From IMG/VR virus record IMGVR_UViG_3300042367_000228, positions 124,001 to 188,000 of that record: DNA of 64,000 nucleotides; one strand, given 5' to 3'. The position numbers and the translations under genes were made by a program. Of this stretch, positions 21,243 through 53,346 are shown piece after piece. The notes below the pieces were generated by a model. That model was given only the letters and a program-made list of their open reading frames with translations. It searched no databases and was not told the DNA's origin. Within the stretch, counting starts at the first letter, position 1; each line of letters opens with the position of its first letter.

Positions 21243-21530
21243 TTATCTTAAATTAATTTCAGGGCAAGCAATTGTGAAAAAGCTAAGATCTTTTTCAGAT
21301 TCAAACCCAATAGTAATGTTATAGACAATGGAATTAGATGAATCTAATGAAATCCCCTTGTCTATGTAATATCGATTATTTAAATTTTTAGCAATCCAAC
21401 TGTCAATAGATCTGACTAATTCTGGATTAAATTTATTAATTTTGAAATACGTAAAGTGAGGGCAGGCAAAGCCCACCCTACGCATGTTAAAGTAATTTAA
21501 TGGATTCGGTTTTCCATTTTTTAGAGCCAT
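21243..21530 (-). CDS. Hypothetical protein
   Basis: 95 aa, start overlaps the stop of the VWA gene. Confidence 0.6.
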   Translation of the reverse strand: MALKNGKPNPLNYFNMRRVGFACPHFTYFKINKFNPELVRSIDSWIAKNLNNRYYIDKGISLDSSNSIVYNITIGFESEKDLSFFTIACPEINLR

Positions 21531-22711: not shown

Positions 22712-22743
22712 AAAATACTCCTTAATTTTGTTAGTAAGTGTAA

Positions 22744-22772
22744 AGTATAACACCGCCTTGCGGCGGTGTCAA
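22744..22772 (-). promoter_or_regulatory. sigma70-type promoter overlapping a GC-rich hairpin
   Basis: TTGACA-17 nt-TATACT; the spacer contains ACACCGCC-GCAA-GGCGGTGT. Confidence 0.75.
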
Positions 22773-22783
22773 CTGCTTTGAAA

Positions 22784-23875: not shown

Positions 23876-23969
23876 AGTGTAATTCCTCATAGTGAGTTAA
23901 AAAAATAAAGTTAAATATAATAAGTAAGCAGTGCGTAAGTTGTTGCGTTGCTAACTAACTATGCTGCAT

Positions 23970-26603: not shown

Positions 26604-27041
26604 CTATAGTTTGTTAACTTTAAGGATTCCAAAATCTTGATCTGTAATATCAATACCTTCCGCTGCTGCAGCATTGTAACAGATATCTCTATACCAACGA
26701 CCTACAATTTCATCTTCTGGATCACCATCAAAACCGTACCCTTCTTGTTTTAATTTTTCAATCCAGTAATCATTCCAATCGATTTCAAAGAATCCGTTTC
26801 TGACATTGTCTGGATTAACTCTAAAACCGATTACATCTACCCATGGTTCTTGTTTTAGTGTTGCTTTTTCTTTTTCAGTTAACGGTGCTTTCTCGACAGC
26901 AACTTTAGCTTTTGGTTTAGCTTTAGTTTTTGGTTTAGCTTTTAACTGTTGTTTAGCTTTAATTGCCGCTTGTACTTCTTGTTGGTGTTTTAATTGTGGA
27001 TTTTCGCCACTAAACACTTTTTTTATAAAATTTCCAAACAT
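26604..27041 (-). CDS. Hypothetical protein
   Basis: 145 aa with KEKAT..EPWV...NGFFEIDWN; overlaps the queE stop. Confidence 0.6.
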   Translation of the reverse strand: MFGNFIKKVFSGENPQLKHQQEVQAAIKAKQQLKAKPKTKAKPKAKVAVEKAPLTEKEKATLKQEPWVDVIGFRVNPDNVRNGFFEIDWNDYWIEKLKQEGYGFDGDPEDEIVGRWYRDICYNAAAAEGIDITDQDFGILKVNKL

Positions 27042-27883
27042 TATGTTCCCCAGTTGTTGCCGAAGAGAGGGAGGTGAAGTCTATCACTATATCTCAATCC
27101 GTGTTGTAATGCAAGTTCAGCTACACGCTGATTATTAAGATTGTATACTTCAGTTACTCCGCCTACTGGCATTAAGTAAATTTCACCTTTAAATCCTTTA
27201 TCTTTGTATAACTGCATTACTTCGAGTGCTTCAGTAACATCATCTTCAGACGCTACTACAAACTTTAAATATGACCCATGCCCTGAAAATTGATATTCGG
27301 TTACAATTTCAGGACGTATCGCTTTTTCTCTAGGCTCACCACTTACACTTAGTTTAGGACTAATTGAAAACGTAGTTTGATACCGACGTTCTTGATATAA
27401 GTAATCTTCAAACGTGTTTAATAGTTCTTGTGTACCATTAGTTTCAAATGTAATGTTTTTTAAGTCTGCAAGTTTAGGATGTCTTAGTAATTCTGGATAT
27501 ATTTGTTGCCAACCTGGTAATAATGGTTCGCCGCCTGTAATTACTAAGTGTACTCCACCCCATTCACCGTTAGGTAACAGCGCAATCATTCTGTCTACAA
27601 TTTCATCAGTAGACATAGCTGGACTTAAATGCTTAAACTGCGGATATATCGCAGCATATGAGTCACAACCAGTAGTTACTAATGGAAGTAAATTATAGCT
27701 TGTATATAATGATGCAGATTTTGCAAGATCCAAAGCTTCCGTACTTAATTCACCGTTTTGCATTCCAAAACCTCTACAGCGAAAATTGCAACCAAATGTT
27801 CGTAAAAAAATTGACGGTACTCCCATAAATCGCCCTTCGCCTTGCAGTGAGTAAAATATCTCGCTTATTTTAATGTGTGACAT
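27041..27883 (-). CDS. queE: 7-carboxy-7-deazaguanine synthase (radical SAM)
   Basis: EIFYSLQGEG..GVPSIFLRT.GCNFRC..(insertion)..GCDS, VITGGEPLL, ETNGT, SPKL, RLH. Confidence 0.9.
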   Translation of the reverse strand: MSHIKISEIFYSLQGEGRFMGVPSIFLRTFGCNFRCRGFGMQNGELSTEALDLAKSASLYTSYNLLPLVTTGCDSYAAIYPQFKHLSPAMSTDEIVDRMIALLPNGEWGGVHLVITGGEPLLPGWQQIYPELLRHPKLADLKNITFETNGTQELLNTFEDYLYQERRYQTTFSISPKLSVSGEPREKAIRPEIVTEYQFSGHGSYLKFVVASEDDVTEALEVMQLYKDKGFKGEIYLMPVGGVTEVYNLNNQRVAELALQHGLRYSDRLHLPLFGNNWGT

Positions 27884-28671
27884 GTATTATCCTTGATTAA
27901 TTTAGTTATACCAAATTCTTTAAAAGATTTTCCAACAAACGTTGAAAACTCATTATGAATTGACGCAAATTTATGTGTTATAATAACATCATTATTAATA
28001 ATAGTCAATGTATTTTTAGTAAATGTTGGATAAACTGTTAGTAGTTCTTTACTAGTGTTACAAAATCCTTTAGGTGTACAGTAAGAGTATTTAGATGCAG
28101 TTTGGCTTCTAACTATAGATTGTTGACAAACTATGCGTGGTCGTTTACTAGCTTCTCTTTTTTTGTTAACAGTTGCTATACTGTCTTTTCTACCCTTTGC
28201 TAATGCAACATATATAATACCGTTATATTTGTCAAAAAGTTCTTTAGGAATTCGTTTAATTTCTAAAGTATTCAAATTTTTTGCAACCACTGTGCCTTTA
28301 CTATAATTACTTACAACCTTTGCATGCGATTCTCTAAGGTATGCATACACTCTATTGGTTATTTTATAAGATCGGCATACATCACCAGTTTTAGAATACA
28401 CCATTAAGTGTAATGCTTTAATCATTTTAGGACTATTTGTGCCTTTTGCTAATAATAAATGTGCTATATAATGATGCCTTGCACTTAACGTAATTAAGTT
28501 GTTAATATTATCTAATCCGCCAAATGACTTAGGAACGATATGATGAGTTTCGGTGTATTTGTCATTAAGTACTAAGGTTTTACAATGCTCAATAAATGTT
28601 ACATAGCGGGTTATATTATGATTGTTTGGATTTAAAGAATGTTTTAAAATATGTTGTTTATAGTCAGTCAC
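27865..28671 (-). mobile_element. Free-standing HNH homing endonuclease
   Basis: ETHHIVPKSFGG.D...NLITLSARHHYIAHLLL; basic C-terminus; overlaps the queE start. Confidence 0.8.
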
Positions 28672-28681
28672 CTGTTATTCC

Positions 28682-28921
28682 TTAAACATTGTTTAATCCG
28701 ATTCTAGCATATCCTAGTGACGCGTTAAGTTCACGACGACCTTCACGGTTGTCTACCTTGTTCTCTAAGATAATAAGATTATGTTGTAATTTTTGAAGAT
28801 ATAGCTTACCATTGCGTTCCAATCTGTCAGCCGGATAGTTTTTAATTCTGTCCATATACCGCTCAATCTCGTCTTTTTTGAGCTGGATTCTATGCTCAAG
28901 ATTCTCTTTAGTTTTTTTCAT
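28682..28921 (-). CDS. Hypothetical coiled-coil protein
   Basis: 79 aa, operonic. Confidence 0.5.
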   Translation of the reverse strand: MKKTKENLEHRIQLKKDEIERYMDRIKNYPADRLERNGKLYLQKLQHNLIILENKVDNREGRRELNASLGYARIGLNNV

Positions 28922-29357
28922 TGTAAGCCTCTTTATGAAATTCTTGACAATCGTTAACTGCAGACTTCAATGCTTCTGCATAGTTTAATGTTTGTTGCTC
29001 GGACATTATAGTAGACTGCTGATATTTAAGATAACCATTAAACCACAAATTCCATGTCATTTTAATACGATGCTGAAACCCGTTAAGAAAGCTCAATGTT
29101 TCGTATGCAATACTGCTTAAAAACGAATTTTTAATTTTGTATGTGTTTGAAACATCAAATGGTCTATCCCAGTACGCAGTTTTTTGCGTTGTAAATGTAG
29201 TTACAGTAATCATATTAAGGTCATCTGCCTCGACCATAAACTCAATATTGTCATCGTCGTTGCCGCATGTGCATTGAATTTTATACATTTTACTGTTACC
29301 CCAGTCACTTGTTTTCATAATGCCTACTGCTGGAATTTGTGGTTTTAAGTCTTTCAT
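28908..29357 (-). CDS. Hypothetical protein (CxC motif)
   Basis: 149 aa with DWGNSKMY..QCTCG; AGGAG RBS. Confidence 0.6.
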   Translation of the reverse strand: MKDLKPQIPAVGIMKTSDWGNSKMYKIQCTCGNDDDNIEFMVEADDLNMITVTTFTTQKTAYWDRPFDVSNTYKIKNSFLSSIAYETLSFLNGFQHRIKMTWNLWFNGYLKYQQSTIMSEQQTLNYAEALKSAVNDCQEFHKEAYNEKN

Positions 29358-29365
29358 AACTCTCC

Positions 29366-30043
29366 TTATTTGTTTACAATACTCATAAATTCTGCACGAG
29401 TAGTTGGATCGTTTTTAAATGCACCACCTAACTTACTAGTAACAGTAGAACTGCCAGTATCTTCTACACCTCTTGCAGCAACACAATAATGTTTTGCATC
29501 AATAACTACTGCAATATTATCAGTGCCTAATATGTATTCTAATGCATGGAATACTTGTTCGGTTAATCTTTCTTGTACTTGCGGACGTTTTGCAAAGTAT
29601 TCAACTACACGATTAATTTTGCTTAGTCCAAGTACAACCTCGTTTGGAATATAACCAACTGTTGCAAAGCCGTCAATTACAACTCCGTGATGTTCACAAT
29701 TACTTTGTATGTTTACATTTCTTTCCACAACAATTTCATTGTAGCCCATTTTGTTTTTAATAGTAGTACACTTTGGAAAGTTTTCTTCTTTAAGTCCAAA
29801 ATATATTTCATTTGTGTACATTTTAGCCATTCGATTTGGTGTTTCTGCTAAACTATCATCTGTTAAGTCCATTCCTAATGTTGACCATATTGTTGTAAAT
29901 GCGTTTTCAATAATGTCAATTTTTGTTTTATTATCAACTACTAGGGCTGTATTATTAATCGGAGTTTCGACTCCTTTACTAATTAAATATTCTCTTACTC
30001 GTTTACCTAACGCTGGATCTGTTTTAGTTTTATCAAAGCTCAT
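29366..30043 (-). CDS. folE: GTP cyclohydrolase I
   Basis: ETPNRMAKMY, SNCEHH, GLSKINR, RPQVQERLT, HYCVAARGV. Confidence 0.95.
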   Translation of the reverse strand: MSFDKTKTDPALGKRVREYLISKGVETPINNTALVVDNKTKIDIIENAFTTIWSTLGMDLTDDSLAETPNRMAKMYTNEIYFGLKEENFPKCTTIKNKMGYNEIVVERNVNIQSNCEHHGVVIDGFATVGYIPNEVVLGLSKINRVVEYFAKRPQVQERLTEQVFHALEYILGTDNIAVVIDAKHYCVAARGVEDTGSSTVTSKLGGAFKNDPTTRAEFMSIVNK

Positions 30044-30057
30044 TATTTTAATTCCTG

Positions 30058-30918
30058 TTATATTTGTTTGTGATTTTTAAAAGTAGGTTTATCATGTTTC
30101 CAAATTAATCCAATTTGATAGCATTGTGTAGGATTATCGCTAATATCTTGATTAGTTCGGTATTTTCCTTTAAGTTCACCTTCAAAAATTATTCTCTGTT
30201 TAGAAGGTTTATTTAATCTACCATATGTAATATTATAATTGTTTTCTAAGTAAAAGTCAACATCTTTTTTAGATAAAAAATATTCAACATTGTTAATTAT
30301 ACACCATTTATACCCTTTAGTTGCAGATCTACCATACATGCCATTATTAGTACCTACTCTTGCCATAGTAGTGTTAGCACCAATTCTTGTTTTAATACCG
30401 GTTGTAACAATAATATCATGATGACTATTAGCCTCTTGTAAATCTAATAATTTAGATTTCTTAATAATAGTATGTTCTTTGATGTTAGTATTGTATACTG
30501 TAAATGTGTCTGTTCTTAGCCCAATGTGCGGTTGTAAGTTACGAACAGGGTTACTCCTTGCAGTTTGATGGGACACCCACCCTCTCTCACGAATATTTGT
30601 TATTTTATAGTTTCTAAATTCTAAAATTAATTTAGTCTCTAATTCTACTGCATCTTCTTCAGATAGATTAGTGGCTACTTTAAAAATTATTGGTAATAAC
30701 TGCAATCTAGTTAATTCTCTAATTGTGTTTAATTTATGTGAATTTTTATATTTTCGTGTAGGCCGTGCTTCTTTAAGATGATCAAATAATCGATTATTTT
30801 TACCGTAACCTACATAAAATGGTTTAAATAACAGTGAACAAAATGTAGAAACATATTGACCTGGTGTTCTTGGATCTAAGTATACATAGACATAGTATAT
30901 ATTGTTATTAGATGACAT
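30058..30918 (-). mobile_element. Free-standing GIY-YIG endonuclease with NUMOD3-like motif
   Basis: YYVYVYLDPR...PFYVGYG...R..H, ELETKLI, GTNNGMYGR. AAGGA RBS precedes the ATG at 30918. Confidence 0.78.
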
Positions 30919-30995
30919 ATAAGATTCCTTACTCCTTACATAATTGATTTTTAAAATGGGCATTCCTATCATGATTGCCCATTGTTATTTATTAG

Positions 30996-31157
30996 TTAAG
31001 AGTTCTTTGTCAATGTTTTTAAGTCGTCTTCTAAGTATTCTAGATATTGTGACAAACCTAACAGCATACGTTGATTGTTTGAATCGCTATGTTTAGCAAT
31101 ATCACGTTTTACTTGTGCAATTTTTTCTTGTAATTCTTCTTTAGTTAAATCTGTCAT
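30996..31157 (-). CDS. Small coiled-coil protein (53 aa; not in the ORF track)
   Basis: MTDLTKEELQEKIAQVKRDIAKH...LEYLEDDLKTLTKNS*, with a GGAGG RBS. Confidence 0.6.
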   Translation of the reverse strand: MTDLTKEELQEKIAQVKRDIAKHSDSNNQRMLLGLSQYLEYLEDDLKTLTKNS

Positions 31158-31497
31158 TTTTTACCTCCGATCTTGCTATTTCTAAAAACATTTGATATTT
31201 TTCGTATGCTGCTTTAACAGTTGGATTAGAATCTCTAACATACATATCTTCATAATATTTTTTATTCCAGTCTTCGCACTTTTCAGCTTTGTCAATTAAC
31301 TTTATAAAATCGTTCTCGTGTATTTTAACAGTTAATGACCGTGTAACGTTTGCTCTTTCGCTTGGTAGGTTTGATCTTGACCAATCTAACGAATAGTTAT
31401 CACCTGCAGCATAAAATTGTTCAACGTCTATGCTTCGTATACCGTGTTTCTTAGCTATTGAATGTAGTTCCATTATTTCTTCCAGTAGTTTTCCCAT
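31141..31497 (-). CDS. Hypothetical protein
   Basis: 118 aa ending in NPTVKAAYEKYQMFL. Confidence 0.55.
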   Translation of the reverse strand: MGKLLEEIMELHSIAKKHGIRSIDVEQFYAAGDNYSLDWSRSNLPSERANVTRSLTVKIHENDFIKLIDKAEKCEDWNKKYYEDMYVRDSNPTVKAAYEKYQMFLEIARSEVKNDRFN

Positions 31498-32003
31498 GGA
31501 AAGTCAATCCAAATCGGATCGTCTCGTTTATCAAATTCTTCAGCACAATAATCAACATGTGCATTGCTAGCAGAATTATCAAACACTGTAGCAAATCTTA
31601 CATTTTTATGCCAAACATCGTGTTTCCATCTTATAGAATCTGGTAAACATAATGATTGCCAATCTTCTTTAATCCAATCGAGTGTTGCACCCGAATCGTT
31701 AATATCGTCTACAATTAAAATGTTTTTAGCACGTCCGGTACTTGCTAGTTCGTCATCAGTAACACCAAATGCATCACAAGCCATCCATGCATTATGTTCA
31801 TTGTCGTCTGGATGGTCACGTAAACTAACATGTAATGTTAGCATCTTAACTCCGAGATACTGACTAAGTAAGTTAGCGGGGATAAGTCCCCCGCGTGTGA
31901 TTCCGACAATGTAATCTGGTTTCCAATTAGCAGCTTGAACTTGGCGTGCTATCTCTAATGCGGCACCTTCTAATTGTGCCCAACTATATTTTACTACTTT
32001 CAT
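31473..32003 (-). CDS. Type I purine phosphoribosyltransferase (Gpt-like)
   Basis: KPDYIVGITRGGLIPA, PRPP loop ILIVDDINDSGATL, WIDFPWE. Confidence 0.88.
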   Translation of the reverse strand: MKVVKYSWAQLEGAALEIARQVQAANWKPDYIVGITRGGLIPANLLSQYLGVKMLTLHVSLRDHPDDNEHNAWMACDAFGVTDDELASTGRAKNILIVDDINDSGATLDWIKEDWQSLCLPDSIRWKHDVWHKNVRFATVFDNSASNAHVDYCAEEFDKRDDPIWIDFPWENYWKK

Positions 32004-32431
32004 TCGTCGTCCTTTGGTAACATGCTATCCTCATAGCAAATTGCATAAATTGTTTTTAAATTTCCGTATGCTTTTTCTAAACCTGGATATTCGTCGCATA
32101 ACTTCTTAAATGCATCCCATTCTGGAAACGCATCTATAAAAGGTCGTCCGTTCATTGCAGTTGAGTTACTCCAGCTACCGTTACTACTTAATGTACTACC
32201 TCCTATTCCGTTATATGCATAGTAATTACTTGTTAAATTAGTAGCTATAGTATTATACCCGTATACACCATTAGAACCTGTGATAGTAATTGTATCACTT
32301 GCTGCTGCTGTTCCACTCATAACATTTGACGCCGTGTATGCCGATAATGTACTTGCATCGAACGCCGGTATACGAACATGTGCATCTCCATCCATAGTAA
32401 ATGTAATCGTATCTTTATTTGAATCTATCAT
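32000..32431 (-). CDS. Hypothetical protein
   Basis: 143 aa with a low-complexity N-terminus and C-terminal LCDEYPGLEKAY. Confidence 0.55.
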   Translation of the reverse strand: MIDSNKDTITFTMDGDAHVRIPAFDASTLSAYTASNVMSGTAAASDTITITGSNGVYGYNTIATNLTSNYYAYNGIGGSTLSSNGSWSNSTAMNGRPFIDAFPEWDAFKKLCDEYPGLEKAYGNLKTIYAICYEDSMLPKDDE

Positions 32432-33509
32432 ATAATTTCTCTGCGTTAAAAAACTCTTTTGTTAAATATTCTGCTTGGGTGTTTACATAATGCGCTATAC
32501 TATCATAGTTTTCTATATAATAAATAATTTTATTACATAAATCATAACTGTGCGTTTCGTAATTTTCGTAACTAATAGACCATTCTGACGGGTATTTAAA
32601 ATGATACATATACATTTCTTTATAACTTAGTCTATCGGGTACCATTGGTATAGCACCAAGCAATGCGCCTTCGTAACAACTTATGCCTAGGGTTTCTTGT
32701 AAGTTAGCACTAAACACAATCTTTGCTTCGCTTAATAATTTATGATATTCGTCTTTAGTTAGCTTCTCGTCTTGGCACACTACAAAATCGTATTGCGGTA
32801 ATTGCATAGCTAATGATCTAAAAATATCAACTTGTTTTTCTGGAGCAACCCTATGCGGAAACAATATTAGATCACGTTTTTCTGAATTTTTATAAGGAGT
32901 TAGCGTATCTTCTAAATACTCCATAGGCCAACCTGTTTTTATAATAGACCCATCGTCGTATATTTCGTCCCAATCCTCGTCGTACCATGGATTTTCACTT
33001 GGATAACCATTTTGTATAACATTGTTAAAAAACATTCTTACGTGAAACTCGGTAGCAAAATAGTTATGAGTGTATGCAGTGTACATACTTTTTTCAGCAA
33101 GTCTAACCCATGCGTCTTTAATATTACCTAAAAAGTCGTGTGGATCATAACTTCCTGCGTGCCATAGACCGTGGAATGTCCAATTTAGATGTTCTAAATC
33201 GTTAATGTACTTTAATTGTATAATAGTAGGATTCCATGCATCAGTAAATAAGAAATGATCATTAGGAGTAGTCCTGTGATAATTTTTTAAAAATCCAACA
33301 AGCTGAGAACTTTTCCATACGTTTGTGTCGACAAAGTTTAAAAATGCACCCGGAGTTACATCGGTTGCGTTTTGTTCGCCGTCTATTTGAATTATGTTGT
33401 ATTTGTCGTTAATATAATTGCTTAGTTGTTTAGGGATATGAGTGTGCCATTGTCTAGTATATCTAGTATCTAATGGTTCTACAGGAAATATCCAAATAGT
33501 AGGTTTCAT
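32415..33509 (-). CDS. GT-B (GT4-like) glycosyltransferase
   Basis: ILFPHRVAPEKQ, IVFSANLQETLGISCYEG...AIPMVPDRLSY.EM (ExxGxxxxE motif). Confidence 0.8.
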   Translation of the reverse strand: MKPTIWIFPVEPLDTRYTRQWHTHIPKQLSNYINDKYNIIQIDGEQNATDVTPGAFLNFVDTNVWKSSQLVGFLKNYHRTTPNDHFLFTDAWNPTIIQLKYINDLEHLNWTFHGLWHAGSYDPHDFLGNIKDAWVRLAEKSMYTAYTHNYFATEFHVRMFFNNVIQNGYPSENPWYDEDWDEIYDDGSIIKTGWPMEYLEDTLTPYKNSEKRDLILFPHRVAPEKQVDIFRSLAMQLPQYDFVVCQDEKLTKDEYHKLLSEAKIVFSANLQETLGISCYEGALLGAIPMVPDRLSYKEMYMYHFKYPSEWSISYENYETHSYDLCNKIIYYIENYDSIAHYVNTQAEYLTKEFFNAEKLYDRFK

Positions 33510-33526
33510 AAAATTCCTTAGAGAAT

Positions 33527-33548
33527 GAAAGCTCCATGAGGAGCTTTC
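33527..33548. terminator. Hairpin, probable terminator
   Basis: GAAAGCTCC-atga-GGAGCTTTC in the intergenic gap. Confidence 0.55.
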
Positions 33549-33565
33549 GTGGTTGAAAATAATTG

Positions 33566-33814
33566 TTATGATTTTTTATAATTTTTAGGTCTAACACCGT
33601 TTGGCCAAGGTTTATTACCTTGATATGGTTTGCGTGGACGTTTACTTGCTAAGTATGCACCATACGATTTACTATCTTTGCGATATAAATCCGATGGATC
33701 AAATTTACGTAACTCAATTCTGCAAAAGTCATGAAATGCTTCTAAATCTTCAAAGATTTTAACAACATCTGGACGTGATTCGAAGTATGAGAATGTTTTG
33801 TAATTTTTAGCCAT
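33566..33814 (-). CDS. Small basic hypothetical protein
   Basis: 82 aa with PDVVKIFEDLEAF.DFCR. Confidence 0.6.
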   Translation of the reverse strand: MAKNYKTFSYFESRPDVVKIFEDLEAFHDFCRIELRKFDPSDLYRKDSKSYGAYLASKRPRKPYQGNKPWPNGVRPKNYKKS

Positions 33815-33815
33815 T

Positions 33816-34028
33816 TTATTTTCTTCCGTTTTTTAATATAGTTTGATTAGTACGAACATTTAACGTGTGTTTTAATTCGTGTAGTTGTTGTCTAAGTTTT
33901 GTAATGTGTATCATATGCTTAGGTTTACTGTTACCTGATTGCATATTTTGTTTTTCATAATCAGTTATCTCTTGGCGTAAACGACTAATTTGTTGTTCAA
34001 GCATAGCTTTTGAGATATAATGTTTCAT
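33816..34028 (-). CDS. Small coiled-coil protein
   Basis: Likely start is MKHYISKAM at 34028. Confidence 0.45.
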   Translation of the reverse strand: MKHYISKAMLEQQISRLRQEITDYEKQNMQSGNSKPKHMIHITKLRQQLHELKHTLNVRTNQTILKNGRK

Positions 34029-34029
34029 G

Positions 34030-34188
34030 CTACATATACTTAATAAATGATCCGTTTTCACCATCTTCGGATACTTCAATCCACACTTCTTTGTGTAGAT
34101 ATTCATTTGTTATATTACAGTATAGATCATTACTTATCATTTCGCAACTTTTGTTATCTAATGATAATGTTAATACGTAGTGTTTCAT
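34030..34188 (-). pseudogene. C-terminal remnant of a second T-fold (DpdL/QueD-like) gene, 52 aa
   Basis: MKHYVLTLSLDNKSCEMISNDLY...VWIEVSEDGENGSFIKYM aligns with KSCEMIASDIL...VCVSEDGESDG of 34364-34741. Confidence 0.75.
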
Positions 34189-34275
34189 ATTAGTTGATAT
34201 TTATTATTTTAGTGAAAGTATAAATACAATATTAGTGAGATAGAACTATGCCTAAACTCAAAACCCTTAATAGTA

Positions 34276-34304
34276 ATTATACATGTTATTTGTGCGGTTG
34301 TCAA
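34276..34304 (-). promoter_or_regulatory. Consensus sigma70 promoter
   Basis: TTGACA-17-TATAAT. Confidence 0.65.
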
Positions 34305-34363
34305 GCATTTTACATAAGTATTAATTCCAAAGTCTAAAAATCGATCTAAACGTATAGCTTGTT

Positions 34364-34741
34364 CTATTTCATTAGATGACCTGCGTCAGTTGGCTGGTAT
34401 GTAACAATGCCATCAGATTCACCATCTTCAGATACACAGACTGTATAGTGCCTATCTCCATATTTAGGCAATAAATGATTAGTTAAAATATCACTAGCAA
34501 TCATTTCGCATGATTTGTAATTTTGATCACCTGCAGTGATAAAATCAGTTAATGCCCATTTAACCAAAAAAAACTCTAATTCTCTATCTAAGTGATTAAC
34601 AGAAATAGTTACTTCGATTTTAAAAATGTGACGATGTATATTTTCAAGAAATGCAATTTTAGAATCAATCAATCCTGCATTTGGGTAACAGTGCATACCT
34701 TCAAACTCTGTTCGAATTTTAATAAATGTTTGTAATTTCAT
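34364..34741 (-). CDS. T-fold QueD-like protein, probably DpdL-type
   Basis: FEGMH, LENIHRHIF (LxxxHRHxF rather than the QueD CxxxHGH), ELEF, SCEMIA, VSEDGE; lies in the deazaguanine cluster. Confidence 0.7.
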   Translation of the reverse strand: MKLQTFIKIRTEFEGMHCYPNAGLIDSKIAFLENIHRHIFKIEVTISVNHLDRELEFFLVKWALTDFITAGDQNYKSCEMIASDILTNHLLPKYGDRHYTVCVSEDGESDGIVTYQPTDAGHLMK

Positions 34742-35265
34742 TTAATTATCTTGTCGTCGTTATAGTCGGTCCAACTAGTAAACACATCTTCATTTTGCAA
34801 AACTTTTAAGTTATGTGTCCACACGCCGGGGTTAGTTGCGTTAAAATCTATGTCATCTAATTTAACCATTGTATTATAACTCCAATCTTTAATATTTGCA
34901 ACCGGAAATCTAATTTGAGGAATAAAATTTTCATATGAACATAAATTAGTTTTATTATTAAAATCATTCATTGCTGTAACCGGAATATCTAATGAACAGT
35001 GTTTGCCTAATTTTAAAAAGTGCTCAATAATGTTATTCCAGTTGAGCCAGGTACCTGGTGTGTTTGGATTAAAACTGTGGTTTGCACCAAAGAAGATATG
35101 TGTAATATCTTCTTCAGTATCTAACCGGTGATGTATTGCTTCTGTAGTATGAGCACCAACAACAAATAATGTTTTTAAACCATATGCTGGAGTATGCTCT
35201 ACTTCGGTACCAACAAAAAACTTAGCAGTGTTAGTAGTTATATTGTTATTATACTGTCTATTCAT
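34738..35265 (-). CDS. Uncharacterised protein of the deazaguanine locus
   Basis: 175 aa (FFVGTEVEHTPAYG.KTLFVVG, HIFFGANHSF, KLDDIDFNATNPGVWTH); translationally coupled to both neighbours. Confidence 0.6.
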   Translation of the reverse strand: MNRQYNNNITTNTAKFFVGTEVEHTPAYGLKTLFVVGAHTTEAIHHRLDTEEDITHIFFGANHSFNPNTPGTWLNWNNIIEHFLKLGKHCSLDIPVTAMNDFNNKTNLCSYENFIPQIRFPVANIKDWSYNTMVKLDDIDFNATNPGVWTHNLKVLQNEDVFTSWTDYNDDKIIK

Positions 35266-36931
35266 CTTTAATGCTATCTTCTAGGGTAAGTAAAGTGTCT
35301 TCTTCTTCTTCAGAAAATTCAAATGCCGTCGGATCGACATTATCCTCATCTATGTCGTTAGGATCTATATCTTCAAGTGTCCAAAACTCATTAAACTTTG
35401 TATCAGCATTGATTGTTTTCTTGCCACAATTACCACGTGTACCAGGAATATCAATCCATAATTTGCTATATCTACTAATTAATTTCAATGCAGAACGCTT
35501 AGTTTTACTGCTAATGATTTTATCAATTATATCGCTAACATAAACTGGATTAAATTTTTCATCAACTAACATATATGGCAAAATATTGTTATCAAATGTT
35601 TGATTTGCTCTTTGTACAGCATCAATATGACTCCATACATTATGCCCCATTAAAATAGCGTAACTAAAACTATCCCAACTTGTTCTACCGACTTTGTTAA
35701 TTTTATTCGTACTGCCCATAGTAATCCAATATTTAGGATCATTTAAGTATAGTGGGTTTTTAAATAAGTCTTCATGATCAATGCCATCATTGTCTACTTC
35801 TGTCCAGTTAGGATCACCTGCACCGTAGATACAAATATCTTTTATTTGTACTTGATCAATAAGTGGACTTGGATTAAACACTTTAAAAATACCATCATCG
35901 ATAACCGCGTCTTTAAACAGTCTAGTATCATATGCGTATTTTTTATTATCAACACTCGGGACCATTCGATACACCCATTTAGATCTATCTTCTAATTCTG
36001 TAGTAATGTAAACCTGACCATTTGCTGTAGCCAAAAACGGACTAGCACAATCATAACTAATAGTAAAGCTAGGATTAACATATTTACGAACTGCTCGTTG
36101 AATTATAGTTAGTAAACATGCCCATTCTAATTTACTAGTTCCTAAGAAATGCATCCAGTCGTGCTGGCCTTCTTGAAGCATGTTATCAAATTTTAAACCA
36201 ATAATGCGTTTAAGTACTAACTCGGCATCGCACATGTTTTGTCCACCCATTGCCCAGCCATTAAATGCTTTATCACCGTAGATCTTAGTATCGCAAAACT
36301 TTTTCATACTTTGATACCATTTTTCTGCATCTTTGTGTGTTTCGCCTTGTAATACATTTAAGAATTTACAAGCACCTGTGCGATTTTGAATAAAGTATTC
36401 ATTGTTAATAAATGTACCTTTAACTGCATCTTTGTAATTTCTAATACCTGTTGCTTTTCTACCAGCCGGCATACGTGCTACCCACGCAGGAATATCAAGA
36501 CACATACCGTAATCCATTAACTCGTCCATCCATCGCAGTACTTGTTCACGTTTCTTTTGTGCTTTAGGACAAGTAGGATCTTTCCAATCAGCTGGCCATA
36601 CACCTTTCCCTATTTGGAAGCCTCCAGAGTCACCTAACACCCAACTAGTACTTCTATCTCTATTACGGAACATGTCTTCACTTTCGTCAAACTTATCTAA
36701 ATCTAAGTTTGCATGTCCAGCTGAGTACAAGCACCATTTATAATAAAATTCACCTTTTTCAGGTTCTAAGTAGTTAAGTCCCTCTACACCTGCTTTAAAT
36801 GATGTTGGAATACGTAACGGATCAACATAATTACCATAACGTTGTTTACCAACAAATGTTGAGTAAAACCCTGACGTTGCAGGCAAAAACACGGCATAAT
36901 CCTGTTGTGTTGCTGTTAAGTTTCTATTCAT
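35258..36931 (-). CDS. dpdA: TGT-fold guanine transglycosylase (DpdA-like, presumed to act on DNA)
   Basis: GDSGGFQ catalytic motif, LD.P, NVLQG, WAMGG, MHFLG, YDCAS; clustered with folE and queE. Confidence 0.78.
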   Translation of the reverse strand: MNRNLTATQQDYAVFLPATSGFYSTFVGKQRYGNYVDPLRIPTSFKAGVEGLNYLEPEKGEFYYKWCLYSAGHANLDLDKFDESEDMFRNRDRSTSWVLGDSGGFQIGKGVWPADWKDPTCPKAQKKREQVLRWMDELMDYGMCLDIPAWVARMPAGRKATGIRNYKDAVKGTFINNEYFIQNRTGACKFLNVLQGETHKDAEKWYQSMKKFCDTKIYGDKAFNGWAMGGQNMCDAELVLKRIIGLKFDNMLQEGQHDWMHFLGTSKLEWACLLTIIQRAVRKYVNPSFTISYDCASPFLATANGQVYITTELEDRSKWVYRMVPSVDNKKYAYDTRLFKDAVIDDGIFKVFNPSPLIDQVQIKDICIYGAGDPNWTEVDNDGIDHEDLFKNPLYLNDPKYWITMGSTNKINKVGRTSWDSFSYAILMGHNVWSHIDAVQRANQTFDNNILPYMLVDEKFNPVYVSDIIDKIISSKTKRSALKLISRYSKLWIDIPGTRGNCGKKTINADTKFNEFWTLEDIDPNDIDEDNVDPTAFEFSEEEEDTLLTLEDSIKDE

Positions 36932-38549
36932 GTTTTTTCCATATATATGTTTTATTTCCGCAGTCCCAGATTCTATCATAATTATTATTTTTCATATTTT
37001 CCCATTCGGTTTTTGATAAATCAACAACTTCTAATAATTTAGATAATTTATGTTTTTGAAATTTAATTCTACTCATTATGCGAGACGGATCACTATTTAA
37101 AAAATACCAGTAATTTGGATCAGTATCGTGTATAAATTCAAAACCAAGTTGTGTATATAAATTACCAGTTGACCATCTTCTATCTGCATATGATACAATA
37201 CTACTCGGATTATGTAATTTTATAAAATGTTTAATTAATTTACTACCTGCACCAACTACTGTAGTATTCAATTTATTACAAAAGCGAATCAATTCCCACT
37301 GTGCAGCACTTGTATATCTAGCTTTTGCAAATGTAGCTAACGATACTAATTCACCATCAAACATTGCGCCAATATTTACACTTGACGAGCAATCACCTTG
37401 AATATGATTTTCATTTAAGAAGTTACGTTTATCTGTAGTTGATACGTCTATTATACTACAGTTTCGTGCAAAAATCTTGGTTGATTTATTCAATTTATGC
37501 AATAATTTTGATTTTATAATATCAGTTTGCGTGTTCCATTCATAATCCCATATTTGTATAAGTTGAATATTTTGCTGTTCACATGCAACAGTCTTTGATA
37601 CATGGTATTGTTTAGATTTTCCGTGAAGTTCGCTATGCCAAAAACTTCCATTAAACTCAATTGCAAGATTAAAATCCGGTAAAAAAATGTCAAGCTCACG
37701 TGGTGCAATGATTGTTCTATCATTTCTAATTATGTTTTGAGTGTAATTAGATAAAAAGTCAACTAAATTAGTTTCTCCGGCCGAAACATTAAATCGTTGT
37801 ATATCAATACCAGCTGCAACCAATCTTTTAAGTATCGGCGTTGGAGAACACCCTAGTTCTTCTGCAATTTGACTACATGGTTTCTTTAATGTTACATGCT
37901 GTTCTATAAGAAACTCAAGATTGTGCAATTTATCAATATTCTCATTAGTTAAATGAATATGTTTATTTGACGAAACACCAAACTTTTCAATACAAGTATT
38001 GTGACGTTTATCAATTACGTCATCCCAATTTCTATTAAGAGATGACTGACTAATTTTTAACTTAATCATATCATTTTTAGCTGCATTATCCACACCGTAC
38101 TTTTCTAAATTTCGTTGTTTGATTTTTTCTTTAATTTCTAAAGATTTAAATACGTTATCAACACCGTACTTTTCCATTGTAGCAGCATTTCGAGTTTCTC
38201 TAATAGTTTCATTGTGCATAGGATGACCGCCATACTTAGCTTGATTAGTTTGAGATTTTTTTAATAATATTGCAGGATCAGTGCCCATGCATTTAGCAGA
38301 GCACCATTCCGAATATGATTTTAAACTTTTAACAAACTTAGTAGATAGCTTTCCGCACCGGGTACAGGTTGGTACGTCAATCGTGTCATTAATAACGTGC
38401 CACAATCGTTGATGCGGAGTAGCAGTTTCGCTTAGAAAACTTGTAATGTCAATAAACTCAATAACATGTTCATCTAATATTGTACGTTTAGCAAATAATT
38501 CATTAGCAGTTGATTGCAATTGTATAGAATTATTCAACAGCTTTGTCAT
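36924..38549 (-). mobile_element. Hef/Vsr-like PD-(D/E)xK endonuclease with Zn finger, KYGVDN repeats and a C-terminal Mom-like GNAT domain
   Basis: CTRCG..WCSAKC, repeated EKYGVDN, ELDIF.P..LAIEFNG.FWH. C-terminal ELIRFC..VVGAGSKL..SYADRRWS.GNLY..LGF. Confidence 0.75.
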
Positions 38550-38931
38550 CTTCTTCCTGTTCTGTGGTTAAGGTTGCAAGTAGTGTAGTAACTTCTTGCA
38601 ATTTAGTTTCTAAAAGTGTAATTTTTGTAGACATACCTGTAATTTGATAACTTGTATTAACATAGTTAGCTACATAAGAATTATAGTTATAATTAGTATG
38701 TGGATCTCTATTATATCCTTCGAGAGTAGATAACCTCGATTCAAGTCCTTGCACACGTTGTTTCATGTATTCATAATCAACATAAAACTGTTCAAACGGA
38801 CCAGGTGGAGTCCATACAGGAGCATCTAACTGTGCTAACATTGTTACTTTATCAAGAGATGATTTAACACTCTCGTTGTTGTTAACATAAACAATGTCTA
38901 ATAATTTTAATGCTTTTCTAATATCTATCAT
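38530..38931 (-). CDS. Hypothetical coiled-coil protein
   Basis: 133 aa, operonic. Confidence 0.5.
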   Translation of the reverse strand: MIDIRKALKLLDIVYVNNNESVKSSLDKVTMLAQLDAPVWTPPGPFEQFYVDYEYMKQRVQGLESRLSTLEGYNRDPHTNYNYNSYVANYVNTSYQITGMSTKITLLETKLQEVTTLLATLTTEQEEDDKAVE

Positions 38932-39668
38932 TATTTTGTTTGTGCTGGTAATGTATAAGTATATTCTGCAATTCCGCTATCAACAACAATTTGTAATGCA
39001 CCTTGATCTGCAATACGCATAGTGATGGTTCCGTCTAAATTTAAAATACTTAATATTTGTGCTACCGGCCATGACCAAGTATTTTTTAATTTATAATCAA
39101 TACCGGTATAAAATACAAAAGTACCAGCATGTGTGCTTGCATCACCAAAACTAAACACTAAATTATTATCTTCAGTCGAAACTTGGAATACTGTTTCTTC
39201 TGTGTGTGCAGCAGCTTGGAATTTTAATCGTTGCACATTAGCTGCTTCTGGTTTAAATTCGATATCGTAAACAATTTCTACTTTGTTTTTAGGTTTTTTT
39301 ACTTTTGCTTCGATAATTGCGCGAGCCATAAATCTATAATCATTTTGAAAATCGCCAGCAGCATTAGTAAAGTGTAAACCTGTAGGCACATATTCTCCAT
39401 CTCGGGTGTCGTATACAATATTAATAACTGCATCATTTTTATATTCTGGACATTTAAGATGTAAATCTAATTTGTTTAAATTAGGCATGCCAAATACACT
39501 TGATAAACCGTTAACTGGTGCAAATGTTTTTGCATTAAGAATTACTGATCTATCTTCAGCCATTGAATCAACTTCAACGTAATTGTCATGTTCTGCTGCA
39601 ACCTTAACTAATGGTAAAACGCCTAATGTGTGTGTATGTGCTACTAAATCTTGTAAAAAGTCTTTCAT
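38931..39668 (-). CDS. DNA polymerase sliding clamp (gp45-like)
   Basis: 245-aa beta-rich protein ending YTYTLPA, directly downstream of the polymerase. Confidence 0.65.
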   Translation of the reverse strand: MKDFLQDLVAHTHTLGVLPLVKVAAEHDNYVEVDSMAEDRSVILNAKTFAPVNGLSSVFGMPNLNKLDLHLKCPEYKNDAVINIVYDTRDGEYVPTGLHFTNAAGDFQNDYRFMARAIIEAKVKKPKNKVEIVYDIEFKPEAANVQRLKFQAAAHTEETVFQVSTEDNNLVFSFGDASTHAGTFVFYTGIDYKLKNTWSWPVAQILSILNLDGTITMRIADQGALQIVVDSGIAEYTYTLPAQTK

Positions 39669-39688: not shown

Positions 39689-39717
39689 ATTATAATGTAT
39701 TTGTAGTGGGTTGTCAA
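39689..39717 (-). promoter_or_regulatory. Consensus sigma70 promoter
   Basis: TTGACA-17-TATAAT upstream of the clamp gene. Confidence 0.8.
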
Positions 39718-53284: not shown

Positions 53285-53318
53285 ATTAGTAGCTCCTTGT
53301 AGTATTAAATAAAGTTAT

Positions 53319-53346
53319 ATTATACACTATTTTATAATAATGTCAA
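53319..53346 (-). promoter_or_regulatory. sigma70-type promoter
   Basis: TTGACA-16-TATAAT upstream of clpA. Confidence 0.7.

Follow-up and report, generated by a model that had tools for sequence, protein, structure and literature searches.

The window examined in this study comprises 64,000 nucleotides of IMG/VR virus record IMGVR_UViG_3300042367_000228 (positions 124,001 to 188,000) and matches a 372-kb IMG/VR phage contig. It contains a set of genes for replacing guanine in DNA with 7-deazaguanine, together with a predicted glycosyltransferase (GT), with the following features on the minus strand:
27041-27883 (-), QueE (7-carboxy-7-deazaguanine synthase, radical SAM) with a variant CX3CX36C cluster motif
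27865-28671 (-), HNH homing endonuclease inserted between QueE and the upstream genes
28908-29357 (-), 149-aa ORF (p149) of unknown function
29366-30043 (-), FolE (GTP cyclohydrolase I)
30058-30972 (-), GIY-YIG homing endonuclease
31473-32003 (-), type I purine phosphoribosyltransferase (PRTase; Gpt/XGPRT-like)
32000-32431 (-), 143-aa ORF of unknown function with a low-complexity N-terminal half
32415-33509 (-), predicted GT-B (GT4-like, retaining-type) glycosyltransferase
33566-33814 (-), conserved 82-aa ORF (p82) with a basic C-terminal tail
34030-34188 (-), relic of the ancestral DpdL (C-terminal 45 residues only)
34276-34304 (-), perfect sigma-70-type promoter consensus (TTGACA-17-TATAAT) in the gap after DpdL
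34364-34741 (-), DpdL (T-fold, predicted CDG decarboxylase)
34738-35265 (-), 175-aa ORF (p175) of unknown function with a predicted orphan alpha/beta fold, overlapping DpdA by 8 nt and DpdL by 4 nt and translationally coupled to both
35258-36931 (-), DpdA-like DNA-guanine transglycosylase (TGT superfamily)
36924-38549 (-), homing endonuclease (DUF7487) inserted upstream of DpdA
38931-39668 (-), sliding-clamp-like protein, preceded by a second perfect promoter consensus at 39689-39717
39725-42385 (-), DNA polymerase, marking the upstream boundary

The observation made in the first-pass annotation was confirmed, since the queE, folE, TGT/DpdA-like, T-fold, GT-B, Gpt-like PRTase and 175-aa genes that it listed are all present and co-oriented next to the clamp and polymerase genes. 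QueE was identified by PHROG (phrog_2076, QueE-like, 7e-56) and Pfam (PF04055, Radical_SAM), is 46% identical to the annotated QueE of Synechococcus phage BUCT-ZZ01, and has Cys32, Cys36 and Cys73 invariant in 15 relatives. FolE matched PF01227 (1.8e-58) and is 60-62% identical to FolE of ACP17 and BUCT-ZZ01. The PRTase matched PF00156 (2e-16), with purine, xanthine and xanthine-guanine PRTases as its best PDB sequence matches (1e-8 to 3e-6), and homologues occur in many related loci, including loci without DpdA. The polymerase matched phrog_262 (8e-199), while the clamp-like protein is 29% identical (4e-30) to the annotated sliding clamp of phage Phosso and 33% identical to PA5oct EST35_0314. 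A six-frame search of the 64 kb found neither a QueC motif (SGGxDS) nor a QueD motif (CxxxHGH), and a QueD HMM found nothing; in related jumbo phages, QueD lies far from the cluster. The first-pass annotation had also reported no QueF or ArcS in the window, and although these were not searched for specifically, Pfam scans of about 50 ORFs found neither.

The T-fold protein is DpdL, the predicted CDG decarboxylase of phages that make 2'-deoxy-7-deazaguanosine (dDG), and not QueD. Its sequence LENIHRHIF matches the published LxxxHRHxF signature (Cui et al. 2023, PMC10516641), it is homologous to phiST DpdL (1.6e-13) and to ACP17 gp125, and it aligns apart from true QueDs. A C-terminal relic of the ancestral DpdL lies nearby, where tblastn with the ACP17 and BUCT DpdL proteins hit positions 34036-34170. 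The relic is 91% identical to the last 45 aa of the DpdL in related locus L007 (handles of the form L007 denote the related loci compared in this study), and DNA identity to L007 (92%) begins at about 34166. The promoter consensus in the gap after DpdL matches at 12 of 12 positions; however, this is a consensus match only, and the total number of promoter-like sites in the region is at chance level.

The DpdA-like ORF has its first ATG at 36979, but the likely true start is the ATG at 36931, judged from the consensus N-terminus of relatives, and its DSGGFQ motif lies at 36614-36631. The protein has no Pfam TGT hit. A family profile hit only Zymomonas mobilis TGT in the PDB, in register (D117/D162/D310 corresponding to Asp102/156/280), but weakly (E 0.05-2), while hhalign to ACP17 gp123 gave 93% probability, Atlas neighbours carry PF01702 or PF23859, and the PA5oct homologue is 37.6% identical. 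The GT likewise had no Pfam hit, but an AlphaFold2 model (pLDDT 90.4) gave Foldseek top hits to glycogen synthase, BshA, PglA, MshA and GlgM (E 1e-9 to 1e-6), indicating a retaining GT-B (GT4-like) fold. Residues E272-x7-E280, R220 and K225 are invariant in 34 relatives, so that the EX7E, Arg and Lys motifs are intact; Atlas neighbours are GT1/GT4 families, and at least 8000 clusters, mostly viral, were found. For p175, 4510 clusters were found with no Pfam family, and a confident model (pLDDT 90.8) had no PDB match (best TM about 0.4, E > 0.1) and a single BFVD match, to ACP17 gp122; 27 invariant columns are rich in E, H and D. The 82-aa ORF had no family hit, but it lies between DpdL and GT in most related loci and is present in 26 of 31 GT-positive loci with full flanks, and it belongs to the module. 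The 149-aa ORF had no Pfam or PHROG hit and has homologues just upstream of QueE in the closest relatives (L006-L008 and L010), whereas the 143-aa ORF, also without a family hit, is conserved only in closer relatives (L006-L008, L012, L028 and L037).

In addition to the DpdL relic, three homing endonucleases interrupt the locus. The HNH enzyme (PF01844; phrog_655, 2.5e-31) and the GIY-YIG enzyme (PF22945, 1.4e-13) have no room in relatives L007 and L008, where p149 and QueE are contiguous and FolE directly follows p118, respectively, and the DUF7487 enzyme (phrog_3339, 3.6e-126; PF24308) is absent from all non-identical relatives.

The GT, the PRTase and the 175-aa ORF, presented in the first-pass annotation as additions to a deazaguanine locus, are not peculiar to this phage. 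The module DpdA–p175–DpdL–p82–GT–PRTase–FolE–QueE recurs in its relatives and in cultured phages, namely the PA5oct group, ACP17, Phosso, X1/BUDD and BCSR5. Co-occurrence of these genes across phage genomes, proposed beforehand as a way of checking the idea, was examined in two sets of loci. Of 35 GT-anchored viral loci, 31 carry deazaguanine genes. Among 37 DpdL-anchored loci with at least 5 kb of flank on each side, 31 have both DpdA and GT, 1 has DpdA only, none has GT only and 5 have neither (Fisher 1.4e-5). The test was not corrected for phylogeny; many linked loci belong to related phages, so the counts overstate independence, and the 80 DpdL loci are the ones most similar to the DpdL of the window. 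However, the linkage persists through several gene orders and holds in separate cultured lineages: PA5oct (DpdA-GT-DpdL adjacent), ACP17 (p175-DpdA-GT-DpdL), Phosso (DpdL-GT), and X1 and BCSR5 (p175-like-GT-DpdA). Whether the X1, BCSR5 and L030 proteins are remote homologues of p175 was left undecided by hhalign (probability 9%). The PRTase tracks the CDG-synthesis genes (FolE, QueD and QueE) rather than GT and DpdA, and only 13 of 31 GT-positive loci with full flanks have it nearby. By tblastn, no match to this GT was found in the phages whose deazaguanine chemistry is solved (phiST, Campylobacter phages and immuto 2-6A).

These findings are best explained by a DpdL-type deazaguanine DNA-modification module of a roughly 372-kb jumbo phage in which the inserted base is glycosylated, a reading held with moderate confidence. 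In this view, FolE and QueE, together with a QueD encoded elsewhere in the genome or supplied by the host, convert GTP to 7-carboxy-7-deazaguanine (CDG), steps that follow from family assignment, and DpdL is predicted to decarboxylate CDG to 7-deazaguanine (DG), an activity that has never been shown biochemically. A DpdA3-related transglycosylase would then swap guanine in phage DNA for the deazaguanine, as inferred from the TGT-like catalytic residues and the genomic context. The GT, which is almost never separated from this kind of DpdA, most likely transfers a hexose or HexNAc from a host nucleotide sugar onto the deazaguanine, either on the free base before insertion or on the DNA afterwards, and the resulting sugar-bearing deazaguanine would shield the DNA from restriction. 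Glycosylation is inferred from linkage only, and there is no chemical evidence for a sugar on the base. UDP-GlcNAc is favoured as the donor because homologous GTs in other phages sit beside deacetylases: a PIG-L-like deacetylase in BCSR5 (sub-threshold), a PF01522 deacetylase in L026, and a BshB-like deacetylase plus GlmS in PhiXhv-15. DG has no hydroxyl, so the acceptor atom is unclear; the candidates are the 2-amino group, as in huimycin, or a C7-linked group, although a bulky N2 adduct would sit in the minor groove. The roles of p175 and the small basic p82, both conserved partners, are unknown, while the Gpt-like PRTase may recycle the excised guanine into GTP for FolE or may convert the deazapurine base into a nucleotide, as ToyH and TubE do in toyocamycin and tubercidin synthesis.

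Published work offers some support for this explanation. PA5oct DNA resists cleavage at G-containing restriction sites and is attacked by nucleases that sense hypermodified DNA, while its chemistry is unknown (PMC12191111). Cui et al. (PMC10516641) could not obtain dDG from ACP17 dpdL plus dpdA alone and suspected missing enzymes, and HuiG glycosylates the 2-amino group of a 7-deazapurine (PMC7439116). No paper describing a glycosylated deazaguanine in DNA was found, and the DNA may carry a sugar-decorated deazaguanine that has not yet been described. Overall, the interpretation in the first-pass annotation was partly supported. Its proposal of a QueC-less 7-deazaguanine module with a TGT-superfamily DpdA next to the replication genes holds, its prediction that the route ends at CDG or DG is strengthened by the DpdL signature, which goes with dDG in phage phiST, and comparative data strongly support a functional link between GT and DpdA; however, its suggestion that the GT adds a sugar to the inserted base remains an inference.

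There are several alternative explanations for this gene content. It is possible, though judged less likely, that the DNA ends up with plain dDG (or dCDG), as in phiST, and that the GT acts on a pathway intermediate or small molecule (for example, a pterin or the free base as a transient carrier), serves as a structural partner of DpdA, or glycosylates a different DNA base or another target. Phage phiST has DpdL and a DpdA3 but no GT and shows complete dDG replacement, so DpdL plus DpdA can suffice, and DG lacks an obvious acceptor hydroxyl. In addition, many of the closest structural relatives of the GT act on small molecules (BshA, MshA, SenB, LmbT, and a tetrahydrobiopterin glucosyltransferase at rank 49), a 50%-identical GT occurs in L026 beside other putative modification enzymes with no deazaguanine gene within 10 kb upstream and 3.5 kb downstream, and a weak homologue in the PhiXhv phages is also unlinked. 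On the other hand, the GT is nearly obligately linked to this DpdA family through gene-order changes and across phage lineages, and the deacetylases next to GT homologues suggest that the sugar persists and is tailored further. The window holds no dCMP or dUMP hydroxymethylase, only ThyX and dCMP deaminase, and the acceptor (N-terminal) domain of the GT is very strongly conserved, which fits a fixed acceptor such as a nucleobase or DNA and not a variable host glycan.

It is also conceivable, but unlikely, that the deazaguanine enters DNA mainly before replication, with the PRTase converting CDG or DG plus PRPP to the ribonucleotide, host or phage kinases and ribonucleotide reductase yielding 7-deaza-dGTP for the phage polymerase, and DpdA and GT adding to or editing this. 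The same PRTase family sits inside DpdL clusters with no DpdA or GT within 10 kb, such as L102, a T4-like phage with the order QueD-QueE-PRTase-FolE-DpdL; the PRTase tracks FolE, QueD and QueE, not DpdA; tubercidin clusters use CDG plus a PF00156 PRTase (bioRxiv 10.64898/2026.04.15.718813); and phiST carries a P-loop kinase-like gene and a MazG/dUTPase-like gene in its cluster. However, the closest solved relatives of the PRTase are ordinary xanthine-guanine PRTases, making guanine salvage to refill GTP the simpler reading, only 13 of 31 GT-positive loci with full flanks have the PRTase nearby, DpdA-less loci may encode a DpdA elsewhere in the genome, as Phosso does, and Cui et al. argue for post-replicative insertion wherever a DpdA is present. 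Finally, the membership of the DpdA-like enzyme in the TGT superfamily and the many phages carrying queuosine-pathway genes could suggest a queuosine-type auxiliary metabolic module acting on phage or host tRNA. This is very unlikely given that the protein is far from tRNA TGTs, is homologous to ACP17 DpdA and sits between the polymerase/clamp genes and RNase H, that PA5oct, with its homologue, has restriction-resistant DNA consistent with modified G, and that the window shows no QueC or QueF (the latter not searched for specifically) to make preQ0 or preQ1.

Among known systems, the dDG system of Cellulophaga phage phiST (FolE, QueD, QueE, DpdL, DpdA3; PMC10516641) shares a QueC-less CDG pathway, a DpdL with the LxxxHRHxF motif (32% identity) and a TGT-superfamily DpdA beside the polymerase gene. 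However, phiST has no GT, p175, p82 or PRTase, its P-loop kinase-like gene occupies the p175 position, and its 259-aa DpdA3 is only marginally alignable to the one described here (hhalign probability 25%). The clusters of Acidovorax phage ACP17 and Pseudomonas jumbo phage PA5oct, whose chemistry is unsolved, share homologues of DpdA, GT (34% and 43% identical, respectively), DpdL, p175 and QueE, plus the PRTase in PA5oct, which shows the same order from polymerase to RNase H as the window. Identities are 27-43%, ACP17 keeps QueD in the cluster and lacks the PRTase, and p175 and QueD lie 25-50 kb away in PA5oct.

The T4 alpha- and beta-glucosyltransferases acting on 5-hydroxymethylcytosine DNA are phage GT-B enzymes that decorate an already modified DNA base using a host UDP-sugar as a counter-restriction measure, as the GT described here would, but they are not among the top 50 structural matches of this GT, which is GT4-like with an EX7E motif and whose acceptor would be a purine analogue without a hydroxymethyl group. 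HuiG of huimycin biosynthesis (and the dapiramicins) is a glycosyltransferase encoded with FolE, QueD and QueE homologues that puts GlcNAc on the 2-amino group of a 7-deazapurine (PMC7439116), showing that a GT can take a deazaguanine-type base as acceptor; it belongs to actinomycete secondary metabolism, its acceptor is a free O6-methylated preQ0 and not DNA, and its sequence was not compared with the phage GT. ToyH and TubE of the toyocamycin and tubercidin pathways are PF00156 PRTases encoded with FolE, QueD and QueE that attach preQ0 or CDG to PRPP, while the nearest solved relatives of the phage PRTase, whose substrate was not assayed, are Gpt/XGPRT enzymes. Lastly, in the GT4 plus deacetylase pairs (MshA/MshB, BshA/BshB and PIG-A/PIG-L), the acceptors are inositol phosphate, malate or phosphatidylinositol; no deacetylase was found in this window, but BshA and MshA are among the best structural matches of the GT, and related phage clusters place a PIG-L-like or polysaccharide-type deacetylase beside it.

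The deazaguanine locus described in the first-pass annotation is real, and every gene of the locus lies on the minus strand in a tightly packed arrangement. The features examined here are as follows.

27041-27883 (-), QueE (CDG synthase, radical SAM)
27865-28671 (-), HNH homing endonuclease
29366-30043 (-), FolE (GTP cyclohydrolase I)
30058-30972 (-), GIY-YIG homing endonuclease
31473-32003 (-), phosphoribosyltransferase (PRTase) of the Gpt/XGPRT type
32415-33509 (-), 364-aa glycosyltransferase (GT) with a predicted GT-B fold
34030-34188 (-), 52-codon ORF, a relic of the ancestral DpdL
34364-34741 (-), intact DpdL, a T-fold protein and predicted CDG decarboxylase
34738-35265 (-), p175, a 175-aa protein of unknown function, overlapping DpdA by 8 nt and DpdL by 4 nt
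35258-36979 (-), 573-aa DpdA-like ORF, with a likely start at 36931
36924-38549 (-), homing endonuclease of phrog_3339/DUF7487

A megablast search of the 9.9-kb locus against 50,697 phage records found nothing, so protein-level searches were needed. QueE matches the PHROG QueE-like family (phrog_2076, 7e-56) and the radical-SAM family PF04055, and its three cluster cysteines (C32, C36 and C73) are invariant in 15 relatives but have an unusual CX3CX36C spacing, which differs from the CX3CX2C and CX14CX2C forms of characterised QueEs. FolE is a full-length match to PF01227 (1.8e-58, profile positions 1-178 of 179); it is 60-62% identical to FolE of phage ACP17 and cyanophage BUCT-ZZ01 but only 32-36% identical to that of most phages of its own clade (71-76% to the two closest) and is flanked by homing endonucleases, which suggests replacement by a foreign allele. 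The PRTase matches PF00156 (2e-16), with PDB hits to purine, xanthine and xanthine-guanine PRTases and an acidic-hydrophobic PRPP loop (ILIVDDINDSG) visible in the sequence, although its base specificity was not examined. No Pfam or PHROG hit was obtained for the GT, DpdA, p175, the small basic protein p82, p143, p118 or p149.

The 573-aa ORF contains DSGGFQ and has the catalytic and base-binding aspartates of the TGT superfamily, while the window protein itself has no Pfam hit. A single-sequence PDB search with it gave nothing useful, but a profile of the family hits nothing in the PDB except tRNA-guanine transglycosylase. The alignment is in register, pairing DSGGFQ with DSGGYQ, LD-IP with FD-TP, and [FY]DCASP with FDCVLP, and thus placing D117, D162 and D310 on Z. 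mobilis Asp102, Asp156 and Asp280, although the match is weak (E-values of 0.05-2). D117 and D310 are invariant in 17 sequences, and D162 is invariant in the 14-sequence set. Neighbouring clusters in the Atlas carry the TGT or DpdA Pfam families (PF01702 or PF23859). With regard to the DpdA3 subfamily of Cui et al. (PMC10516641), hhalign links the protein to ACP17 gp123 with a probability of 93% (E 3e-7) but to phiST CGPG_00065 with a probability of only 25% (E 8e-4), and the protein of L030 (one of the related phage loci compared here) bridges to ACP17 by BLAST; these comparisons do not settle whether it belongs to DpdA3. Relatives start at the position of the second Met, so the likely start is 36931, the coordinate chosen in the first-pass annotation.

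The T-fold protein was considered as a possible QueD, but this identity is rejected on the motif and the alignment. It reads LENIHRHIF (34622-34648), which is exactly the LxxxHRHxF signature, in place of CxxxHGH, by which Cui et al. (PMC10516641) defined DpdL, the predicted CDG decarboxylase of phages that contain 2'-deoxy-7-deazaguanosine (dDG). H36, H38 and F40 are invariant, and R37 nearly so, in 18 DpdLs, whereas true QueDs align separately, with HC..xHGY and a roughly 35-residue insertion. The protein is homologous to phiST DpdL (1.6e-13) and ACP17 gp125, and it is encoded with FolE, QueE and DpdA within 10 kb. No QueD and no QueC was found anywhere in the 64 kb by motif, tblastn or HMM. 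The first-pass annotation had also named a search for queC and queD beyond the window; the rest of the 372-kb contig was not searched, but in related jumbo phages QueD lies tens to hundreds of kb from the cluster (in PA5oct at 171.5 kb against a cluster at 223-228 kb, with Phosso and X1 similar), so a distant phage copy or the host enzyme is the likely source.

The intact DpdL is a xenologue, being 64-72% identical to those of loci L016 and L028 and of cyanophage BUCT-ZZ01 but only 39-42% identical to those of its closest relatives. Downstream of it lies the DpdL relic, which is 91% identical to the last 45 residues of the DpdL of relative L007, and a perfect TTGACA-17-TATAAT separates the two; relic and consensus lie within 34030-34304. 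DNA identity to L007 begins at about 34166, which marks a recombination breakpoint inside the old gene. Three different homing endonucleases sit inside the modification cluster, and none was seen in non-identical relatives: the phrog_3339 gene found no match there, and gene spacing in relatives L007 and L008 leaves no room for the other two. The phrog_3339 gene overlaps the longest reading of the DpdA ORF by 56 nt.

The GT gave no useful match in a single-sequence PDB search and no Pfam family at E <= 0.01 (including PF00534, PF13439 and PF13692), and only a minority of related Atlas clusters carry PF00534; it therefore represents a divergent, unclassified GT-B lineage. Its predicted model is confident (pLDDT 90.4, pTM 0.88) and has the two-Rossmann GT-B fold, with 130 PDB matches at E <= 1e-3 led by retaining GT4/GT5 enzymes such as glycogen synthase, BshA, MshA and PglA. 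The EX7E motif (E272, E280), R220 and K225 are invariant in 34 sequences, and their assignment to the nucleotide-sugar donor site is made by analogy with GT4 enzymes. Relatedness to the T4 DNA glucosyltransferases was not found, as neither AGT nor BGT is among the 50 best PDB fold matches and there was no sequence hit in the PDB. Similarly, the only link to the tRNA-queuosine mannosyltransferase QTMAN is a TM of 0.74 between a relative's model and a QTMAN cluster, and there is no hit to the QTMAN_N domain (PF12038). The pI of the GT was considered as a clue to DNA binding but is not informative, because DpdA is equally acidic.

The protein p175 defines a family of 4510 clusters with no Pfam model and has 27 invariant columns rich in Glu, His and Asp. 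Its model is confident (pLDDT 90.8) but matches no solved structure, its only match in BFVD is its ACP17 homologue, and an Atlas feature search was uninformative. Small proteins directly upstream of the GT in X1, BCSR5 and L030 share N-terminal GxEVEG..TLF-like and C-terminal motifs with p175; however, with an hhalign probability of 9% and hmmsearch E-values of 0.001-1, their homology is unproven. Neither phiST CGPG_00066 nor the Phosso 'glycosylase' is a p175 homologue. The former (L038:16382-16861, minus strand, in the phiST locus), which lies between DpdL and DpdA3 and was left unassigned by Cui et al., has a Walker-A/P-loop motif (GEICSGKDT) and looks like a small nucleotide kinase.

The GT, and on the longest of the matching loci all 21 window proteins compared from polymerase to exonuclease, are 100% identical to IMG/VR contigs, one of which is 372,016 bp, so the window belongs to a jumbo phage. 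The order Pol … DpdA–p175–DpdL–p82–GT–(p143)–PRTase–FolE–QueE–p145–5'-3' exonuclease is kept in relatives whose polymerases are 59-91% identical. The same order, from polymerase to RNase H, is seen in Pseudomonas jumbo phage PA5oct, where EST35_0316 is the DpdA, 0317 the GT, 0318 the DpdL, 0321 the PRTase and 0322 the QueE. Elsewhere in the window, the phage encodes ThyX, dCMP deaminase and PhoH (19179-19961, 59152-59658, 58376-59107), as well as a ClpB-like double-AAA chaperone, a DnaJ, a Cpn10/GroES-like protein, and a MoxR-type AAA ATPase next to a DUF2201 metallopeptidase/VWA protein (51002-54176, 62199-62579, 21530-23890). Very large ORFs of 3054 aa and 1471 aa on the plus strand (9965-19129 and 127-4542), which were not analysed, are presumably structural.

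Co-occurrence of the GT, PRTase, p175 and DpdA across phages had been put forward in the first-pass annotation as a check on its hypothesis, and the comparison made here shows that the GT is a recurrent partner of this kind of DpdA. Of 35 GT-anchored viral loci, 31 carry deazaguanine genes in the fetched flanks. Of 80 DpdL-anchored loci, 37 have at least 5 kb on both sides, and of these 31 have both DpdA and GT, 1 has DpdA only, none has GT only, and 5 have neither (Fisher 1.4e-5); these counts are not corrected for shared ancestry, and the 80 loci are the ones most similar to the window's DpdL. Among GT-positive loci with full flanks, p175 is present in 24 of 31 and p82 in 26 of 31. The PRTase is different, as it is near 13 of 31 GT-positive loci but also near 4 of 6 GT-negative ones, so it goes with FolE, QueD and QueE. 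The linkage survives several gene orders, including DpdA–p175–DpdL–p82–GT, DpdA–GT–p175–DpdL, DpdL–DpdA–GT, DpdL–GT–DpdA and p175–DpdA–GT–DpdL, and appears in phages as different as T4-like ACP17 and 469-kb Phosso. In cultured phages, tblastn with the GT finds 22 records; in the PA5oct group, Phosso, ACP17, X1/BUDD and BCSR5 the hit lies beside DpdA and/or within about 3 kb of DpdL, while a weaker homologue (26%, partial) in the Ep032/PhiXhv group sits instead with GlmS and a BshB-like deacetylase. The same search found the GT in no phage with known deazaguanine chemistry, namely phiST (dDG), Campylobacter phages (dADG) and immuto 2-6A (fdPreQ1).

The interpretation offered in the first-pass annotation, in which a QueC-less pathway supplies a deazaguanine that may be glycosylated once inserted, is partly supported, and its steps rest on evidence of unequal strength. 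The conversion of GTP to H2NTP by FolE and of CPH4 to CDG by QueE follows from family assignment, with QueD necessarily supplied from elsewhere. The conversion of CDG to DG by DpdL is a prediction based on the published signature; it has never been shown biochemically for any member, heterologous tests failed in Cui et al., and the activity was not measured here. The exchange of guanine in DNA for the deazaguanine by DpdA, which was likewise not assayed, is inferred from the conserved TGT catalytic residues, homology to ACP17 DpdA and the replication-module context; PA5oct, which carries a 37.6%-identical homologue, resists G-containing restriction sites and is targeted by nucleases that sense hypermodified DNA (PMC12191111). 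Transfer of a sugar to the deazaguanine by the GT is inferred from linkage alone, and no chemical data were obtained for any of these steps.

In this view, the donor is probably UDP-GlcNAc or UDP-hexose, as suggested by the deacetylases found near GT homologues. BCSR5 has a PIG-L-like deacetylase two genes upstream of its GT, with the APHVDDE motif and a sub-threshold PF02585 score (4.7e-5), and L026 has a PF01522 deacetylase close upstream of a 50%-identical GT, with one small ORF between them; the third case is the PhiXhv homologue with its GlmS and BshB-like deacetylase. This mirrors the MshA/MshB, BshA/BshB and PIG-A/PIG-L logic and suggests that the sugar persists long enough to be tailored. 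The X1 and BCSR5 clusters (L041:7341-11867 in Xanthomonas phage X1 and L042:7161-11454 in Burkholderia phage BCSR5) add a PP-loop ATPase (PAPS_reduct family, taken here to be of the same superfamily as QueC) and a PIG-L/LmbE-like deacetylase beside the p175-like gene, GT and DpdA; a more elaborate product, such as an amino-sugar or amide-linked one, is possible. The acceptor atom is unknown. Huimycin and the dapiramicins show that a GT encoded with FolE, QueD and QueE can glycosylate the 2-amino group of a 7-deazapurine (PMC7439116), whereas a C7-linked handle, either the CDG carboxylate or a group installed by p175, would place the sugar in the major groove instead. In a separate phage lineage (L030:3875-12290, also L029), the order is QueD–QueE–FolE–PRTase–Pol–x–(possible p175-like 145 aa)–GT–DpdA–x–dUTPase, and no DpdL was seen in 13.5 kb; the GT and DpdA may work there on CDG rather than DG, and the sugar may therefore not require decarboxylation.

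There are several alternative explanations for these genes. The DNA may contain plain dDG, as in phiST, with the GT acting on an intermediate, a small molecule or another target; phiST itself, the small-molecule acceptors of the GT's structural relatives, and the GT homologue in L026 are the evidence for this possibility. The L026 gene (L026:4955-13201) has no deazaguanine genes nearby, and its neighbours are a non-specific endonuclease, an AMP-binding/methyltransferase fusion, a polysaccharide deacetylase, a CTP-synthase-N-like protein and a DNA ligase, which may represent a different DNA-modification island. However, the near-obligate DpdA–GT linkage argues against this explanation, as does the lack of any dCMP or dUMP hydroxymethylase in the window, where only ThyX and dCMP deaminase were seen; glycosylation of hmC had been named beforehand as an outcome that would count against a sugar on deazaguanine. 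It is also possible that deazaguanine enters DNA by a pre-replicative route through the PRTase. L102 (L102:6685-10366), from a T4-like phage, has QueD–QueE–PRTase–FolE–DpdL, and a Pfam scan showed no TGT-like gene, and no GT was detected, within 10 kb. Similar loci (L053, L073, L074, L082, L094, L098, L103, L108, L121 and L122) have the form QueE/QueD-(PRTase)-FolE-DpdL with no DpdA-family protein or GT detected in the flanks. These loci resemble tubercidin logic, in which CDG and a PRTase combine, and hint at a DpdA-independent, nucleotide-level route to deazaguanine DNA or at a DpdA encoded elsewhere. For the window this route is a secondary or parallel possibility, and guanine salvage to refill GTP is equally consistent with the PRTase. 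A tRNA target for the TGT-like enzyme is unlikely: the protein has no Pfam TGT hit and is far from tRNA TGTs, it is homologous to ACP17 DpdA, it sits between the polymerase/clamp genes and RNase H, PA5oct with its 37.6%-identical homologue has restriction-resistant DNA consistent with modified G, and no QueC or QueF to make preQ0 or preQ1 was found in the window, although QueF was not searched for specifically.

The most far-reaching possibility, which is tentative and somewhat less likely than not, is that a conserved DpdA–GT core, usually accompanied by p175 and p82, makes a previously unrecognised DNA hypermodification, a sugar-bearing 7-deazaguanine (hexose, HexNAc or HexN on DG or CDG). 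Eight 7-deazaguanine derivatives are known in phage DNA, and none carries a sugar; if the GT decorates the base, this would be the first glycosylated purine analogue in DNA, a counter-restriction chemistry comparable to glucosyl-hmC, but on G. The module is abundant in metagenomes, with at least 8000 GT clusters and 4510 p175 clusters at 90% identity, and would be widespread in environmental large phages; it also occurs in phages that can be grown, such as ACP17, Phosso and the P. aeruginosa jumbo phage PA5oct, whose G modification is known only from restriction resistance. The comparative data also point to a possible DpdA-independent, PRTase-based route in other phages.

Compared to known systems, the locus belongs with phage 7-deazaguanine DNA modification, and specifically with the DpdL branch. 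The features for which no description was found in the literature examined are the conserved DpdA–GT core with its usual partners p175 and p82, the abundance of this core, and its absence from the chemically solved phages; if the sugar adduct is real, it is a new DNA base. Cui et al. reported that ACP17 dpdL plus dpdA gave no dDG in E. coli and suggested that other enzymes may be needed, a failure that the hypothesised sugar-bearing product would explain. The comparative data name the GT, p175 and p82 as candidate missing components of the DpdL/DpdA3 pathway, and in ACP17 the obvious candidates are gp122 (p175) and gp124 (GT).
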